Positions 8,099 through 28,767 of a DNA stretch of 64,000 bases are shown here, piece by piece; position 1 is the first letter of the stretch; each line of letters begins with the position of its first letter. Below the pieces are notes generated by a model. That model was not told where the DNA came from and searched no databases. It saw nothing but the letters and a program-made list of their open reading frames with translations. This DNA comes from Mobula hypostoma (Eukaryota). The stretch is from NCBI RefSeq assembly GCF_963921235.1, contig NC_086120.1, positions 24,862,001-24,926,000 on the forward strand, read 5' to 3'. Made by a program: the position numbers and the translations under genes.

Positions 8099-8299
8099 TC
8101 AGACAGTCGCTTCCACTTCCACTGAATCTTCATCCTCCAGAAGACTATAAACCGCATGGACCTGGACTGGCCTCTGCAGCGGATGTGCGAGTAACTTGGC
8201 CATGCAGTTATGCAGCTCCACAGCTTGTCCAGTGAGTGACACGTCGTATTTGTAGCCGGTTCCCTTTGTGTCCAAGTTATTGAAAAATGAATGAGCTTC
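8099..8299 (-). CDS. BABAM1: BABAM1/MERIT40 last coding exon (8)
   Basis: ttcttcacacag|EAHSFFNNLDTKGTGYKYDVSLTGQAVELHNCMAKLLAHPLQRPVQVHAVYSLLEDEDSVEVEATV*, matching the MERIT40 C-terminus (LLAHPLQRP...EVEATV). 201 nt, phase 0. Confidence 0.97.
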   Translation of the reverse strand, partial: EAHSFFNNLDTKGTGYKYDVSLTGQAVELHNCMAKLLAHPLQRPVQVHAVYSLLEDEDSVEVEATV

Positions 8300-17040: not shown

Positions 17041-17127
17041 CTTGGAACCAGGCTCCTCTTCCATTTCTTCAGTTCTGTTGTAAACATAAATCACATCGAA
17101 GAAAAAATAAGGGGATTGCAGAATTTT
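17041..17127 (-). CDS. BABAM1: BABAM1 coding exon 7
   Basis: ccccacag|KILQSPYFFFDVIYVYNRTEEMEEEPGSK|gtagtg. 87 nt, matches MERIT40 PYFFFDVVY. Confidence 0.95.
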
Positions 17128-18269: not shown

Positions 18270-18399
18270 GCTGAAGTGCTCCACTGAAACTGACTGCGGG
18301 TTGCAGGGTGTTCGAATGTAGACTAGTATCATCCGTACGATGTATGGAGGCGGGATTGTCTGCACACTTTCTGTCACTGGCAATTCAATTTTCTGTTGT
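18270..18399 (-). CDS. BABAM1: BABAM1 coding exon 6
   Basis: cccag|(V)QQKIELPVTESVQTIPPPYIVRMILVYIRTPCNPQSVSVEHFS|gtaagt. 130 nt, phases consistent. Confidence 0.96.
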
Positions 18400-20836: not shown

Positions 20837-20861
20837 ACAAGGTTAAAGAGCCCATCCAGAT
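20837..20861 (-). CDS. BABAM1: BABAM1 coding exon 5 (25-nt microexon)
   Basis: ttccag|ATCTGGATGGGCTCTTTAACCTTGT|gtaagt = (D)LDGLFNL(V), matching NLEGLFSLI. It is needed to keep frame between exons 4 and 6. Confidence 0.93.
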
Positions 20862-21708: not shown

Positions 21709-21787
21709 CGAAAGACTCACAGACATTTGTATCTAGGTCGTACAGACAGCTGCAAACTTCCCGGGGGTCAGAGGTAAAGCCAGACAG
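21709..21787 (-). CDS. BABAM1: BABAM1 coding exon 4
   Basis: cattccag|LSGFTSDPREVCSCLYDLDTNVCESF(D)|gtatcc. 79 nt. Confidence 0.96.
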
Positions 21788-22150: not shown

Positions 22151-23185
22151 CACTCCATCGTCCCGCCACCCCACTAGGAATAGGGTTCCCCTTGTCCTCA
22201 CCTACCACCCCACCAGCCTCCGGGTCCACCATATAATTCTCCATAACTTCCGCCACCTCCAACGGGATCCCACCACCAAGCACATCTTCCCCCCCCCCCC
22301 CCCGGCTTTCCGCAGGGATCGCTCCCTACACGACTCCCTTGTTCATTCGTCCTCCCCATTCCTCCCCACCGATCTCCCCCCTGGCACTTATCCTTGTAAG
22401 CGGAACAAGTGCTACACACACTTCCTCCCTCACCACCATTCAGGGCCCCAGACAGTCCTTCCAGATGAGGCGACACTTCACCTGTCAGTCGGCTGGAGTG
22501 ATATACTGCATCCAGTGCTCCCGTCCTTCTATATGTTGGTGAGACCCGACGCAGACTGGGAGATCATTTTGCTGAACACCTATGCTCTGTCCGCCAGAGA
22601 AAGCAGGATCTCCCAGTGGCCACACATTTTAATTCCACGTCCCATTCCCATTCTGACATGTCTATCCACGGCCTCCTCTACTGTAAAGATGAAGCCAAAC
22701 TCAGGTTGGAGGAACAACACCCTATATTCCGTCTGGGTAGCCTCCAACCTGATGGCATGAACATTGACTTCTCAAACTTCCGCTAATGCCCCACCTCCCC
22801 CTTGTACCCCATCTGTTATTTATTTATATACACACATTCTTTTTCTCTCTTTCCTTTTTCTCCTCTGTCCCTCTCACTATACCTCTTGCCCATCCTCTGG
22901 GTTTTTTTCCCCCGCTCCCCCTTTTCTTTCTCCCTGGGCCCCCTGTCCCATGATCCTCTCGTATCCCTTTTGCCAATCACCTGTCCAGCTCTTGGCTCCA
23001 TCCCTCCCCCTCCTGTCTTCTCCTATCATTTCGGATCTCCCCCTCCCCCTCCCACTTTCAAATCTCTTACTAGCTCTTCTTTCAGTTAGTCCTGACGAAG
23101 AGTCTCGGCCCAAAACATCGACTGTACCACTTCCTAGAGATGCTGCCTGGCCTGCTGCGTTCACCAGCAACTTTGATGTGTGTTG
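22151..23185 (+). mobile_element. Penelope-like retroelement, 5'-truncated
   Basis: Near-identical to ~10060-11095. The hammerhead motif at 23088-23123 has GAAA changed to AAAA. It ends ~12 nt from the BABAM1 exon 3 donor. Confidence 0.9.
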
Positions 23186-23197
23186 TATTGTTCTTAC

Positions 23198-23318
23198 CCA
23201 AGTGACTTCATCATTCACCACCACGAGGGCAAACTCATGCCGCTTGTCAATCTTGTGCTTTGTCCTGACAAACATTTCTATCATTTTCTGAGCAATGTTT
23301 AACGCGTTGGTTTTGGAA
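23198..23318 (-). CDS. BABAM1: BABAM1 coding exon 3
   Basis: tacttag|(G)SKTNALNIAQKMIEMFVRTKHKIDKRHEFALVVVNDEVTW|gtaaga. 121 nt, vWA-like domain. Confidence 0.97.
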
Positions 23319-23479
23319 CTAAGTAAAAAAAAACAAAAGAATAAAATCAAATTCAGCAATTCCCAGTACCTAATCAAAGTCAAATCACTACAGTCCCAGT
23401 ACCTGAGTCACAGCCGATCCAATAGCCTCAAGGATAAATGAACTATCAACCCAACTATCACCCAGTACCACAGAAACTT

Positions 23480-24700
23480 GCATTGAATGAGACAGTCACT
23501 TGGCCCACAGTTCCTACTCACCCTCCCACCACACCACCCCCCCCCAGACAGAAGAGGGATAGAGTTCCCCTGGTCTTCCCACCCCACCACCCTACATCTC
23601 CACTACATCAAGCTTCATAACTTCTACCACCAGCCGCAACTTCCCCTCCCCACCCCTTTCCACATGGATCACTCGCTCTGTGGTTCCTCATCTGCTCATC
23701 CTTCCCCAAGCACTTTCCCCTCCAACCATAAGAGGTGTTACCTCTACACCTCCTCTCCTACCATCATCCAGGGCTCTAAACAGCCCTCCTGGGTGAGGCA
23801 GACATTCACATGCCTTAATTATTAAATCTAGTCTTCCTGACGTGGTCTCTTTTACATTGACGAGACCAGGAATAGACCAGACAACAGCTTTGCTGAGCCA
23901 CAGTACTCCGTCCACCATGGATGTCTGGATCTCTCGGTTGTTATTCTCCTTCTCATTTCCATGTTGATATGACTGCCCTCAGCATCTTCCTCTGCCAGGG
24001 TGTGGCTAAACACAAACCAGAGGAATAGCACCTCATATTCTGCCTAAGTAGGCACCCAATGGCAAGAGTACTGAATCCTCCAACTTCCAGTAAACTGCTC
24101 TCCTCCTGATCTACTCACATCAGCCACCATCACGTCGTTTTTTGCCCTTCCTTGAGTCACTCGATCTTCCCATCACCCACACACTCCTCCGCTGTTCCCA
24201 TCTATCTGCCATTCCATGATCCACCTTACTCCCCGCAGCTTCCATCACCTTCACCTTTAGCCTTTTGTCACCCGCCCAGTTTCCACTGCTGCTTTCAATC
24301 TACCTCCCTGCATCTGCTCTTGCTACACCCCTTCCCTCCATCTCTTTAAACCAGCTATCTCCCCTCTATCTTTCAGTCCATAGCAAGGGTCTCAACCCAA
24401 AATGTCAACTCACAAACATGAGAAAGTCTGCAGGTGCTGGAAATCCAAGCCACACATATACACACAAAATGCTGGAGGAACTCAGCAGGCCAGGCAGCAT
24501 CTATGGAAAAAGAGAACAGTCGACATTTTGGGCTGAGACCCTTCTTCAGGACTGCTGCCTGGCCTGCTGAGTTCTTCCAGCATTTTGTGTGTGTCGCCAA
24601 GAAGTCAACTGTCCATTTCCCTCCATAGAAGCTTCCTGACCCACCGAGTTCTTCCGCAATCTTGTGTGATTCTCCAGATTCCAGCACCTACTGTCTCCTG
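23480..24700 (+). mobile_element. Old degenerate Penelope-like copy with a younger fold-back element nested at 24411-24596
   Basis: Decayed RDRVPLV...GIY-YIG homologous sequence. The nested insertion is flanked by ccaaaatgtcaact / ccaagaagtcaact. Confidence 0.75.
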
Positions 24701-25803
24701 TGTCTCCACTTGGCCCACTGTACATGGCTAGGATTTTTTTTAACTACCTAATTAGTTGCCAATTTTTTACTATTCCACAGCTATCATCACCCACAGCCCC
24801 ATCGAGTAGTTATCCAATTCAGCTATTAAACTTGCTTGCACATTCCACATCACAACTCACTGTACAAATACATTCTAATCTTTCCTTTTACCAATTATGA
24901 TAAATCTGTGCTGTCTTTGGTTTTTTTCTTTTTGCTAACTCCTGGAAACAGTAGTCCTTAGTTTCTCCATAAAAACCATAATAACCTTTAATGTTCTTTG
25001 TGAAAATATAAATTCTCCTCTCAGCCGTTTTGCCACCAGATTAATTCCACAGGGACAAAACTTGAAGAGACTAATTGCATTCTCAAAGTCAATACAGAAT
25101 AAAATCCAAAACCCTTCCCTATTGGCCACTCCACTAAACAAAATGTTATGACAAAGCTAAAATTCCTCACATGGAACTCAGCTCTACACTAAACTCTAAA
25201 AACCCAATCAACATCAACTCAACTTACTCTCAAAGCAAAACCTCTCTTTCTTCCTCCTCACCCGCACTGCAGTCCTCCGAGACTTCCATTCCACTCACTC
25301 TGCATGGATTCTGTTAAAACTACAATTCTCGATTAGTCATTCAATCTTACAACCTGCACTTGGACACAAGAAGAAACTGGTCTAAAAGGCTGACTTCCAA
25401 ATCAGATAAAGAATGGCAGCCACACTTGATTCACATAACATTTGCCTCATCCCATCTCAGCTACACAAGCCTCCTCTCACTCAGTCTCACCTTACCTTAG
25501 GAATATATTCTATTGTTTTTAAAGCAGTTTCATTTTAAATACATCTCTGCTTGTTCCCTCAACTACTCCCTGTGGGAACAAATGGTACATTTTCACCACT
25601 GAGGCAAATGTTTCCGCTGATTCTACTTATTAAAGACCCATCTTATCTGTATCTCCTCTAAATAGCACATTAAATAGCTTCATAAAGTTTCAAGCTTCTT
25701 CAGCATTCAGTTTTCCTGCAGAAAGAAAGCGCCAGTCTGCCCAATTTTCTGGCAGATGTTCATAGATGGCAAGCGTCAAAATAATAACATGAAGTATCCT
25801 AAC

Positions 25804-25862
25804 CCATTCATCGACTCTAGTTTCTGCAGTGACATCTCCTCTGAAAGATCCAAGCAGATGAT
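25804..25862 (-). CDS. BABAM1: BABAM1 coding exon 2
   Basis: cttcacag|IICLDLSEEMSLQKLESMN(G)|gttagg. 59 nt. Confidence 0.96.
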
Positions 25863-26968
25863 CTGTGAAGAGAATGAGACAAGACTTGAAGCCAGACCTT
25901 TTGCAGTCTGAGCCTACATGATAGACACATCGCTGACCCATGACCCAGATCTAACCCACTCAGCAAAACATTGCAATGCTTAAAACCTTACTCTAATGTA
26001 ACTAGGACCATCACACCATGACACACAAAACTGGTGCTCAAAAGAAATCACACTTTAAAAATGTCTACAACACACAGAAACCATCTTCCTTGTTAGCGGC
26101 ACTCTCCATAAACTGCAACTTTGTCAGTAATCCAGGATAAACTTTCACTTGGGCTGCCTTCAGTCCTTCAATCTCACTGTCCTACACATGCTTCAACATA
26201 AAATACATTTAAATATATCCCAATCTCCTCATTGTAGATCGTCCCTTCTGCTGTTTCTGATGTATCCTCATCTCTCTGTATACATCCTTCTATGCAACAG
26301 CCATCTGTGATGATCAGAACCCCAATAAAAGGACCTTGGGCTGTAAATCCTTTCCCTGAAAGTTTGCTATACAGTAATCACTATCAAACCTGGCTTTTCC
26401 CCTCCCCACATACAACACCCATTGGGATTATGGAGAAATATTTGTCATAATTTGGATATTTCCATCTACAGAATTAGGTTAGGAGCCAGGATGGAAGTAG
26501 TTTGGGTCACATAATGACTGAGCACTCAACACACCAGCTTCATACCTACAGAGGGATACTGTACTAATAATCCAAGTTGCATAATCCTTATTCCTAATTT
26601 ATTTCTTATAACTCAATTATAATGTAATGAGTGCATTAGCTTTCTAACCTCTCTATACACAAAAGGCCATTTCAAATCTAACTAATTCCCTCCCGCAAGA
26701 CAACCAAATTCCATTTATCAATCAAGGTCATTCAAAACTTCCCCTCCTTTCCAGATAACTCATACATTAAAATGTCTCCAGCTTTCGATTCTACATTACA
26801 TACTCTTCAGATTTTATTACATAGCTTCCTGCAGAACAGAAGTGCACCATCACAAAAGTTTAGTAACTGATTCGGTCAACATGCACTACAATAATTTTCC
26901 CTAATTATATATTTTATTTCCAAACAGTAATTGACCAGTTTTTTAAAAGCAAACACAACAGAACTTAC

Positions 26969-27658
26969 CACTTTCTCTGGGCAGTTAACCTTTGGGGTCC
27001 TGATCTGAATCTCAGGCTGGGGTTGACTTTGGAACCGCAGTTGAGATTGGAATTGGGGCTGACTCTGGGATTGGGGAAGGGCTGAAGACTGACCTTGAGG
27101 CAGGGTCTGGTTTTGAAGCTGAGGTTGGCTTTGAGACTGGGGCAGCGACTGAGGTTTGGACTGGAATTGGGACTGAGACTGAGACTGGGGCAGTGACTGG
27201 GTTGGACACGGGGGTGTAGGTTGGGACTGACTTTGGGTTTGGTTTGCGGTTTGGGGTGGATTGGGGGACTGATTTGAAGACTGGGACTGGAATTTACTCT
27301 GGGATTGAGTTTGAGTTATGGACTGGGGCTGGAACTGGCTTTGAGATTGGGACTGGGGTTGAGACTGGTTCTGGGTCTGGAACGAGGGCAGACTGTGGGC
27401 TTGGGCCTGGGCCTCCTGTTCCTGCTGCCTCCTCCGACTACCCCTGGTCCTTCCCCCGACTCCTGGGCTCTCAGTTCCAGCCTCTCCATCTCCTTCTCTA
27501 CTGCCCGACTGCGCCCCCTGACCGGGCGGATCCTGTCTGTCCTCTGCGCCCTCGGGGTTGGACCGGGTACTCGGCCGCTGAACGCTCGGGCCCGAAGCCT
27601 GGGGCTCGGGTTCAGAACCGGCCGGCGCCTCTCGGCCTTCCTCAACGGGCGCCGACAT
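26969..27658 (-). CDS. BABAM1: BABAM1 first coding exon with expanded Q/S/P-rich N-terminus
   Basis: MSAPVEEG...TRSNPEGAEDR (tankyrase-binding motif)...IQIRTPKVNCPEKV|gtaagt. 690 nt, phase 0. All 8 exons sum to 1392 nt, or 463 aa plus stop. Confidence 0.92.
27011..27382 (-). repeat. BABAM1: Coding hexamer-like repeat (CAGTCY/CAATCY) encoding an SQ/TQ cluster
   Basis: Repeated gactgg/gactga/gattgg units on the plus strand. The protein has recurring LPQSQSQxQFQ units. Confidence 0.9.
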
Positions 27659-27689
27659 TTCTCCACTACAAACACCAGGGCGGAAATCG

Positions 27690-27870
27690 TCCTTAATGGT
27701 TTCTGGGAGATGTAGTTCCTCGTCTTCAGTTTCCGCCTGTGAAATCAAAAGAAGGACTACAATCCCAGAGGAAACAGTGGCGCCGCTATTTTGTAGTTCC
27801 TGATGCCTCTTTCCCATTGCACTCAACGAGAAATAAACTACATCTCACAGAATGCTGCGTGAAACTTCGC
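27690..27870. promoter_or_regulatory. BABAM1 promoter (probably bidirectional) with clustered ZNF143/SBS-type motifs
   Basis: ACTACATCTCCCAGAA (minus, 27701-27716), ACTACAATCCCAG (27756-27768), partial GGAACTACAAAA (minus, ~27789-27800) and ACTACATCTCACAGAATGC (27837-27855), all next to a CpG-rich exon. Confidence 0.8.
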
Positions 27871-28767
27871 CAGAGCATGTCTTTCGTTTTATCATCTATC
27901 TTGTTATATGATTACCGTAAATCAATCTATTTCTAAAAGGCTCATCCATTCCAACACAATGTATGACAACTCATGGATAACCAGAAAATACTAATTTATT
28001 TCCTTTCTTACTTACGAGAAGGGAACGATTTTTTGTTTCTCAACTTTTATTGTAGTGAATTATGGTCAGGGAGGGCAAGTATATCTTTAATTGTAGCTGT
28101 TAACCTCTATATGTGGAAATCTCTCCTAATTTTGGCTGCTTTAGAAATTCGTGTTGGGATTTTAGAAATTCCACTGTTTTATTTCTGCTACTTGATGATG
28201 TGTAAACTATGATTCTAATCAATTAAACCCATTGTTGATTAGATCCCACACACAGACTGGGGTCAAAAGTGTTCCAATCTTCTCCGTCTTCCTCACTGTA
28301 CACCTTACCTTCAACAAGTATCCCGCTGGACTGGGACTGATATACAGAGTGAGCTGGACATTGTTTAAATTTTATTAACACTACTCCAGGACCATTAGCC
28401 ATATCTCATTTATAGTAAACAGACTATACTGATTTGCATAAGTGCATAATTGGAGCTGCAAGTTATTAATCCTTTCATTGGAAAAATAATTAACTCTTTC
28501 ATTTGCCCCGCAATAAAAATTGTTATCTTTGCTGTTAATTTTCATTCTACTTTCTCCTTCACACGTTCTATCTCTGACTCCTTCTTGAATTCTGTCTCCA
28601 GTTCAGCGATAGGTTAACAACTAGATAATCTATTGCAGGCCACAACTCTGTAGCCTGTTTCTACGATTCCTATACTATACCACAAGTTTCTTTGTCTCTC
28701 TCGCTCGGTGCTTCCAAGTTGAAATTCCTTTTTCCACAATTGTGGTTTCTTCTCTGCTCGAGTTGAC

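Follow-up and report, generated by a model that had tools for sequence, protein, structure and literature searches.

A half-conserved, glutamine-alternating insert in the N-terminal linker of elasmobranch BABAM1, probably a disordered linker or interaction module

Introduction

Is the stretch of alternating glutamines in the N-terminal tail of BABAM1 from Mobula hypostoma a target of DNA-damage kinases, a linker or binding module of another kind, or an expanded repeat that drifts freely? BABAM1 (also MERIT40 or NBA1) is the scaffold of two deubiquitinase complexes, BRCA1-A, which acts in double-strand-break signaling, and BRISC, which acts in interferon and mitotic signaling; its VWA-like domain builds both complexes, and its N-terminal tail is a docking site of regulators, through tankyrase binding and Akt/mTORC2 phosphorylation. 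The gene lies in a 64,000-nucleotide (nt) stretch of the M. hypostoma genome (RefSeq assembly GCF_963921235.1, contig NC_086120.1, positions 24,862,001 to 24,926,000; “the window”, numbered from its first letter), in which positions 27011–27382 on the minus strand, the 3′ part of BABAM1 coding exon 1, encode a 124-amino-acid (aa) tract of the form (X-Q)n. An earlier reading of the letters alone (the sequence-only reading) had proposed that repeat expansion created here either a lineage-specific cluster of Ser-Gln and Thr-Gln (S/TQ) sites for ATM/ATR or a phase-separating low-complexity domain. We report that the tract is retained in mRNA, that it is present throughout the elasmobranchs examined, and that it is composed of two halves, of which the C-terminal one is under purifying selection; we consider it probable, at roughly 60%, that the tract is a constrained, disordered linker or interaction module in BABAM1.

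Results

The Two Halves of the Tract Evolve Differently

The tract and its parts are located as follows (aa numbers are those of the Mobula protein; dN and dS are nonsynonymous and synonymous divergence).

27011..27382, minus strand: (X-Q)n tract, aa 93–216, 124 aa, from translation and counts
27191..27382, minus strand: hypervariable N-terminal half, aa 93–156, from the linker alignment; dN 0.30
27011..27190, minus strand: conserved C-terminal module, aa 157–216, 72–97% identical across elasmobranchs; dN/dS 0.12
27161..27193, minus strand: motif copy 1, LPQSQSQSQFQ, aa 156–166, conserved in batoids and most sharks in the alignment
27113..27145, minus strand: motif copy 2, LPQSQSQPQLQ, aa 172–182
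27047..27079, minus strand: motif copy 3, LPQSQSQPQFQ, aa 194–204

Alignment of the linkers, with identity taken by segment, places a sharp boundary between variable and conserved parts near aa 156. On its N-terminal side the Mobula sequence is 94% identical to that of Hypanus, 16–52% identical to those of sharks and 16–64% identical to those outside Hypanus, with many indels. This half holds 12 of the 22 Mobula S/TQ sites (13 if the boundary is set six residues further on), and relatives have between 1 (Scyliorhinus) and 14 (Hypanus) S/TQ upstream of the conserved module. The C-terminal module is 72–85% identical between rays and sharks, as compared with 88–99% for the VWA domain. For aa 157–216, comparison with the skate-like transcript contig L001, a single species pair and 60 codons, gave a dN of 0.063 and a dS of 0.51 (omega 0.12, Fisher P = 3e-6), and the VWA and C-terminal part gave an omega of 0.07. 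By these comparisons, purifying selection on aa 157–216 is about as strong as that on the folded domain.

The two copies of LPQSQSQPQ[F/L]Q within the module are essentially invariant in 12 species, the exceptions being SHSQ in the second copy of Narcine, a Leu to Thr change in the first copy of Rhincodon, and a Leu to Met change in the second copy of L001. Ser175 and Ser177 of motif copy 2 and Ser197 and Ser199 of motif copy 3 are invariant in 12 elasmobranchs, Ser205 and Ser211 are nearly so, and each elasmobranch has 6–12 S/TQ in the last 66 aa of its linker. Retention of SQ in relatives, on which the sequence-only reading had made its phospho-cluster depend, is thereby borne out for the core of the module but not for the upstream sites with their range of 1–14.

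In transcripts of close relatives an in-frame 6-nt insertion falls at 27165–27167, just inside the conserved half (a single event, found in two organisms and placed behind 27165 or behind 27167), and a second in-frame 6-nt insertion in the exon 1 of relatives lies behind 27400, upstream of the tract. The nonsynonymous tract differences in Mobula-like transcripts include Ser to Pro (twice), Pro to Ser, Ser to Asn, and Arg to Gln; none replaces a Gln, and Arg208 reverts to Gln. Across relatives, Ser is replaced by Pro, Asn or Ala more often than by Thr. The balance of Ser-to-Thr against Ser-to-Pro changes was tried as a test of phospho-acceptor retention and set aside as uninformative, TCN to CCN being a transition, so that the balance may reflect mutation bias.

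Two batoid transcript contigs from different runs (L001:2-688 and L002:1-555) have identical 270-aa C-terminal parts, from the end of the tract through the VWA domain, and linkers that differ by 14 aa. The difference lies in a PQ/PF-rich part and is a length polymorphism within or between very close species.

Glutamine Alternation Accounts for the Density of S/TQ Sites

The 22 sites counted by hand in the sequence-only reading were recovered exactly, as 17 SQ and 5 TQ, all within aa 93–216 (27382–27011) and all between RSNPEGAE (aa 32–39) and IRTPKVNCPEKV (aa 219–230); the densest stretch holds 11 S/TQ in 50 aa. The 124 residues include 45 Gln, 27 Ser, 18 Pro, 8 Thr, 6 Phe and 6 Leu (36% Gln, 22% Ser and 15% Pro), with one Gly, one Arg, one acidic residue and no Tyr, and the X of (X-Q)n is mostly Ser, Pro, Thr, Phe, Leu or Asn. 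In shuffles of the tract’s own composition the mean S/TQ count was 12.7 (observed 22, P about 1e-4). Against the same composition shuffles Q[ST] was observed 30 times (12.7 expected), QxQ 32 times (15.9 expected), and QQ not once (16 expected). When the Gln positions were fixed and the other residues shuffled, 19.95 S/TQ were expected and P rose to 0.24, i.e. the enrichment beyond composition and sequence pattern that would mark an S/TQ cluster domain (SCD) was not found. The organizing principle of the tract is strict (X-Q)n alternation; since Ser is the commonest partner of the alternating Gln, and Ser/Thr is not additionally enriched before Gln, this alternation fully explains the S/TQ richness. 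In 20 of the 22 sites the residue at position −1 is Gln, and QS pairs outnumber SQ pairs in the tract.

At the DNA level the tract consists of degenerate arrays of period 6, 18 and 24, with 63–77% matches, and the spacings of its direct repeats are all multiples of 6, with copies 60–74% alike. The hexamer and LPQSQSQxQFQ duplications noticed earlier are real, in the form of three LPQSQSQ[S/P]Q[F/L]Q copies and period-6 arrays. Near-identical tandem units of the kind expected in a young micro- or minisatellite were not found, the units being 60–77% alike and of mixed codons: Gln is encoded by 25 CAG and 20 CAA, and Ser by six kinds of codon of both TCN and AGY type. This mixture points to an old repeat maintained at the protein level. 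Motif copies 2 and 3 share the codon pattern TCN-CAR-AGY-CAR-CCN, both in Mobula and in L001, and are therefore old duplicates of a longer unit, not products of fresh hexamer slippage.

The Tract Is an Old Elasmobranch Feature

The linker was measured between RSNPEG and RTPKVNCPEK in 122 orthologs. Among elasmobranchs (4 batoid and 7 shark proteins) it is 126–184 aa long, with 26–30% Gln, 5–20 SQ and 0–7 TQ; in L001 and L002, measured from the basic patch at the start of the insertion to the VWA start, it reaches 191 and 205 aa, the N-terminal half being PQ/PF-rich with few SQ. The full tract is present in 12 of 12 elasmobranchs examined. The chimaera Callorhinchus has a linker of 82 aa with a seed of ~25 aa, LPQSHSQPQLQPQPQAQSPFQFQ, that contains 1 SQ. 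In tetrapods, coelacanth and lungfish the linker measures 51–60 aa (51–58 aa in tetrapods), with 0–2 S/TQ, and in teleosts (P0055-P0122) ~110 aa, the latter A/T/S/P-rich and mucin-like, with 3–7 Gln and 0–2 S/TQ. The human linker has no S/TQ, and human residues 62–76 of 329 correspond to Mobula residues 67–211 (a net gain of ~130 aa), in agreement with the earlier statement that human MERIT40 is without such a tract. A library-wide phmmer search added 107 more distant homologues that are extended at the N-terminus; each has at most 20% Gln and at most 2 QxQ.

From this distribution the tract is a chondrichthyan invention that was fully developed before the split of sharks and rays, roughly 250–300 million years ago. 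Since it is elasmobranch-wide and the chimaera has a seed of it, it is neither recent nor a feature of the Mobula lineage; the sequence-only reading was right that an in-frame, repeat-derived insertion sits in the disordered N-terminal linker, and wrong to the extent that it placed its origin close to Mobula. The BABAM1 linker more generally is a hot spot for lineage-specific low-complexity growth. Of the ten papers listed for BABAM1/MERIT40 in combination with shark, elasmobranch or chondrichthyan terms, not one refers to BABAM1 or MERIT40, which is a weak negative.

The Tract Is Predicted to Be Disordered

An AlphaFold2 model computed on a 36-ortholog alignment, with a mean predicted local distance difference test (pLDDT) score of 46.8, has no secondary structure over aa 1–228 (pLDDT 33–45) and an alternating strand-helix pattern over aa 229–446. 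The PDB construct 8pvy_M (259 aa) starts about six residues before the VWA domain. Model and construct point, weakly but consistently, to a disordered tract.

The Tract Is Retained in the Mature Transcript

Logan contigs of four runs from four organisms were placed on 23100–27900, and because these contigs show spliced joints the runs are RNA assemblies. In the run without any difference to the window, one 2152-nt contig spans 26969–27692 unbroken, with joints from 26969 to 25862 and from 25804 to 23318; the intervening segments are bounded by CT..AC on the plus strand and hence by GT..AG on the strand of the gene. The remaining three organisms have the same exon 1-2-3 joints with the whole of exon 1 present, L001 and L002 carry a whole, even longer linker joined to exon 2, and the frame of the tract is open in 12 of 12 elasmobranch species. 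The tract is transcribed and retained in mRNA, as the sequence-only reading had asked to see confirmed.

Among the annotated proteins, P0012 (Rhincodon isoform X4) has a C-terminus that is frameshifted after ESFN, and the older Scyliorhinus torazame gene model P0014 (319 aa) jumps from SPGV to LQTHFQ, omitting the tract. Each has the look of an annotation or isoform quirk and not of a biological difference.

The Gene Is a BABAM1 Ortholog with Eight Coding Exons

Eight coding exons in the window, with GT..AG borders, rebuild the 463-aa RefSeq protein P0001 (Mobula hypostoma BABAM1) residue for residue, confirming the intact frame and protein length given earlier.

26969..27658, minus strand: coding exon 1, aa 1–230; ATG at 27658–27656, GTAAGT donor at 26968–26963, unbroken RNA contigs over 26969–27692
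25804..25862, minus strand: coding exon 2; gene model and splice joints in RNA contigs
23198..23318, minus strand: coding exon 3; gene model and splice joints in RNA contigs
21709..21787, minus strand: coding exon 4; gene model
20837..20861, minus strand: coding exon 5, a 25-nt microexon; gene model
18270..18399, minus strand: coding exon 6; gene model
17041..17127, minus strand: coding exon 7; gene model
8099..8299, minus strand: coding exon 8, with the stop codon; gene model

The microexon at 20837–20861, which codes for part of DLDGLFNLV, was missed by tblastn and is required for the full 463 aa. In homology search the gene matches Mobula hypostoma BABAM1 at 100%. Against solved BABAM1 chains, Mobula aa 212–463 (252 aa) align end to end with human residues 77–329 (E = 5e-126), so that the VWA-like domain and the C-terminal tail are aligned over their full length; that the gene is a BABAM1/MERIT40 ortholog is beyond doubt. 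A Pfam search of the protein gave VWA_2 below threshold only and no match on the tract. Among 8000 word-sharing candidates scored in the homology search, BABAM1 orthologs alone passed, and the module was found in no other family.

Motifs of the N-Terminal Tail around the Tract

The tail upstream of the tract carries the following elements.

27542..27565, minus strand: first tankyrase-binding motif, RSNPEGAE, aa 32–39, identical to the human motif at residue 28
27479..27499, minus strand: position of the second tankyrase motif, REGDGEA, aa 54–60, corresponding to human RSEGEGEA (PMC9688111)
27428..27451, minus strand: basic patch RTRGSRRR, aa 70–77, at the start of the insertion in the linker alignment

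Human MERIT40 has two tankyrase-binding motifs, RSNPEGAE and 48-RSEGEGEA (PMC9688111). The first is invariant in 36 vertebrate sequences. At the second, bony vertebrates retain R-x-E-G-E-G, whereas in Mobula and all chondrichthyans examined the glycine of REGDGEA is at position 5 from the arginine, not at position 6, and because it is one residue closer this position probably does not bind tankyrase. The motif is an accessory feature, and its departure from the pattern (Arg at position 1, Gly at position 6) therefore casts no doubt on orthology. The human tail is also phospho-regulated at Ser29, an Akt/mTORC2 site (PMC9724709); in the corresponding region (27560–27577, aa 28–33) chondrichthyans have RPSTRS and human RPRTRS, so that in chondrichthyan BABAM1 a serine takes the place of the −3 arginine of the R-x-R-x-x-S consensus. 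Elasmobranchs share the basic patch RTRGSRRR, with QQEQEAQAQ after it, almost without change; neither the chimaera nor the bony vertebrates have it. The patch may be a nuclear localization signal that was gained along with the tract.

High-Copy Repeats in BABAM1 Introns

In intron 2, 24460–24610 is a fold-back element of two ~33-nt inverted arms around a core with CAGTCGACATTTTGGGCTGAGACCC. In four organisms the word depth summed over RNA contigs is above 100,000, with hundreds of loose ends, and the element is on these grounds a very high-copy expressed repeat. In intron 3, just downstream of exon 3, the segment 23100–23185 has a summed contig depth of ~1,600 to 170,000 across four runs and many chimeric joints to the repeat at 24460–24554; it probably belongs to the same interspersed repeat family or to a related one. 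Rfam gave no match at gathering threshold for these high-copy intronic repeats.

Discussion

We favor the reading in which the tract is a constrained, disordered linker or interaction module. Since teleosts lengthened the same linker independently and with another composition, its length would seem free to vary, and since aa 157–216 are conserved, a sequence-specific function is suggested for that segment. The conserved module may form an extended polar tether, punctuated by prolines, that bears two short linear motifs for binding; it would determine how far the tankyrase-binding tail reaches relative to the arm of the complex, or which partners the tail has. The variable half would be a tolerated spacer, its length rising and falling through slippage by multiples of 6 nt. 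The data can be explained without phosphorylation of the four invariant SQ serines, although such phosphorylation could modulate the module. Several points weigh against this reading: the omega of the module comes from one species pair, the AlphaFold2 model is poor overall and lends disorder weak support, the tether and binding-motif functions are inferred, and four invariant serines in SQ context together with 6–12 S/TQ per 66 aa also fit a conserved target of the phosphatidylinositol 3-kinase-related kinases (PIKK; the ATM/ATR/DNA-PK family).

The last of these points leads to the proposal that the tract, or its C-terminal module, is a functional SCD whose phosphorylation by ATM, ATR or DNA-PK after damage regulates the recruitment, partners or turnover of BRCA1-A/BRISC. 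With 22 S/TQ in 124 aa, 11 of them in 50 aa, it satisfies both definitions of such a domain, namely at least 3 S/TQ in 100 aa (PMC4705472) or, in the stringent form, in 50 aa (PMC3564818); the invariance of Ser175, Ser177, Ser197 and Ser199 and near-invariance of Ser205 and Ser211, the sites kept in the last 66 linker residues of each species, and the purifying selection on the module all favor it, and BABAM1 works at double-strand breaks with a tail already phospho-regulated at Ser29 (PMC9724709). The definition is loose, however, ~25% of the yeast proteome meeting its 100-aa version (PMC3564818), and the abundance of sites is a by-product of Gln alternation, with QS outnumbering SQ. The non-retained half, where numbers vary from 1 to 14, accounts for over half of the Mobula sites, and Ser gives way to Pro, Asn or Ala more than to Thr. 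Across orthologs, conservation amounts to 6–12 S/TQ in the module of 12 elasmobranchs, 1 site in the chimaera and 0–2 in bony vertebrates, whose BABAM1 functions without such a cluster. Acidic residues are almost absent around the sites, and Gln stands before 20 of the 22; a Q-S-Q context without acidic or hydrophobic neighbors is unfavorable for ATM, a consideration to which we give little weight. Inspection of the tract by eye found neither a BRCT-type pS-x-x-F, the residue three before each Phe being Gln, nor an MDC1-type T-Q-x-F; one T-Q-S-L (Thr153) occurs and is kept in 3 of 12 species. As far as the sequences go, phosphorylation of the tract by ATM/ATR is neither supported nor excluded: of the phospho-cluster originally proposed, the formal definitions and the core SQ sites stand, while the significance of the count and the retention of the upstream sites do not. 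We regard a functional SCD as possible but doubtful. A more specific version, in which the elasmobranch ancestor gained a regulatory module consisting of the duplicated LPQSQSQPQ[F/L]Q, with its four invariant SQ serines phosphorylated by ATM/ATR and the upstream array tuning the number of sites, is in our judgment unlikely; if true, it would mean that the BRCA1-A/BRISC scaffold is wired directly to the checkpoint kinases, unlike any bony vertebrate BABAM1.

A prion-like, phase-separating low-complexity domain that condenses BRCA1-A or BRISC, either in the cytoplasm or where DNA is damaged, would be compatible with 36% Gln, 22% Ser, predicted disorder, and regularly spaced Phe and Leu as possible stickers. 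Against it, uninterrupted Q or Q/N runs and low proline, as in polyglutamine (polyQ) and prion-like tracts, were not found (QQ is 0 in 124 aa, proline 15%), Tyr is missing, and Gly and Arg occur once each; a Q-run-free, proline-rich composition without Tyr favors soluble, extended chains rather than condensates. No usable look-alike came from a feature search of the protein atlas with the tract, and we hold condensation to be improbable. Q-rich or SCD segments can also act without phosphorylation, e.g. as expression-enhancing “nanny” tags that raise protein level (PMC10942620). The period-6 architecture, the copy spacings, the 6-nt indels between close relatives, the 14-aa difference between L001 and L002, the highly variable length and Ser/Pro content of the N-terminal half, and the independent growth of the teleost linker with a different composition are what would be expected if the whole tract were neutral filler, i.e. 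a coding hexanucleotide repeat expanded by replication slippage and drifting freely. But the C-terminal 60 aa depart from neutrality (dN/dS 0.12, P = 3e-6) and show 72–85% ray-shark identity, 12 species share two invariant motif copies, no Gln is lost among Mobula-like transcripts while Arg208 goes back to Gln, and heterogeneous codons indicate that the likeness of the copies is kept at the protein level, not by recent DNA copying. For aa 157–216 purifying selection and motif invariance refute neutral filler, and for the tract as a whole we rate it as quite improbable. A further possibility, that the tract results from faulty annotation or is an exitron usually removed by splicing to leave a mature protein without it, would accord with P0014 and with the fact that each CAG codon is a potential AG acceptor; but contigs of four organisms and two independent batoid transcripts join the full tract to exon 2, all 12 species have an open frame, and selection acts at the protein level on half of the tract. 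The P0014-type junction occurs in no contig, although contigs could miss a minor isoform; as the main form an exitron is refuted, and this explanation is highly implausible.

BABAM1 protein sequences with the tract are already in public databases; the finding is a lineage-wide, half-constrained (X-Q)n insert in a known protein. The tract offers a test case for how a repeat expansion in a disordered linker can turn into a constrained functional element, with four specific serines and two 11-residue motifs as experimental targets. It also carries a caution for motif counting, as 22 S/TQ look striking yet follow from dipeptide periodicity. If the sites were proven to be ATM/ATR targets, the DNA-damage response would have been rewired specifically in this lineage, a clade whose members are known to evolve slowly and live long.

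Comparison with Known Systems

Human and mouse BABAM1 (MERIT40/NBA1; PDB 6H3C, 6GVW, 9SQY) share with the Mobula protein the VWA-like domain and C-terminal tail, RSNPEGAE and a disordered N-terminal tail. The Mobula protein differs in having ~145 aa in place of the ~15 aa at human 62–76, an insert made up of the basic patch, a QEQEAQAQ stretch and the 124-aa (X-Q)n tract, as well as a second tankyrase motif shifted by one residue (REGDGEA) and a serine at position −3 of the Akt site. The teleost BABAM1 linker resembles it in having been lengthened, independently, between the tankyrase motifs and the VWA domain; in contrast to the (X-Q)n tract, it is A/T/S-rich and without dipeptide periodicity.

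The SCDs of BRCA1, 53BP1, Chk2 and Rad53 (SCD1) are similar to the tract with respect to dense S/TQ in a disordered region of a damage-response protein and a cluster that is partly kept. Their sites are scattered, whereas those of the tract arise from a regular dipeptide alternation, with Gln on both sides. PolyQ and Q/N-rich prion-like tracts are likewise glutamine-rich, of low complexity, grown from repeats and variable in length among relatives; unlike them, the BABAM1 tract has no homopolymeric Gln, alternates strictly, contains 15% proline and consists of old degenerate repeats, half of which are conserved over the shark-ray split.

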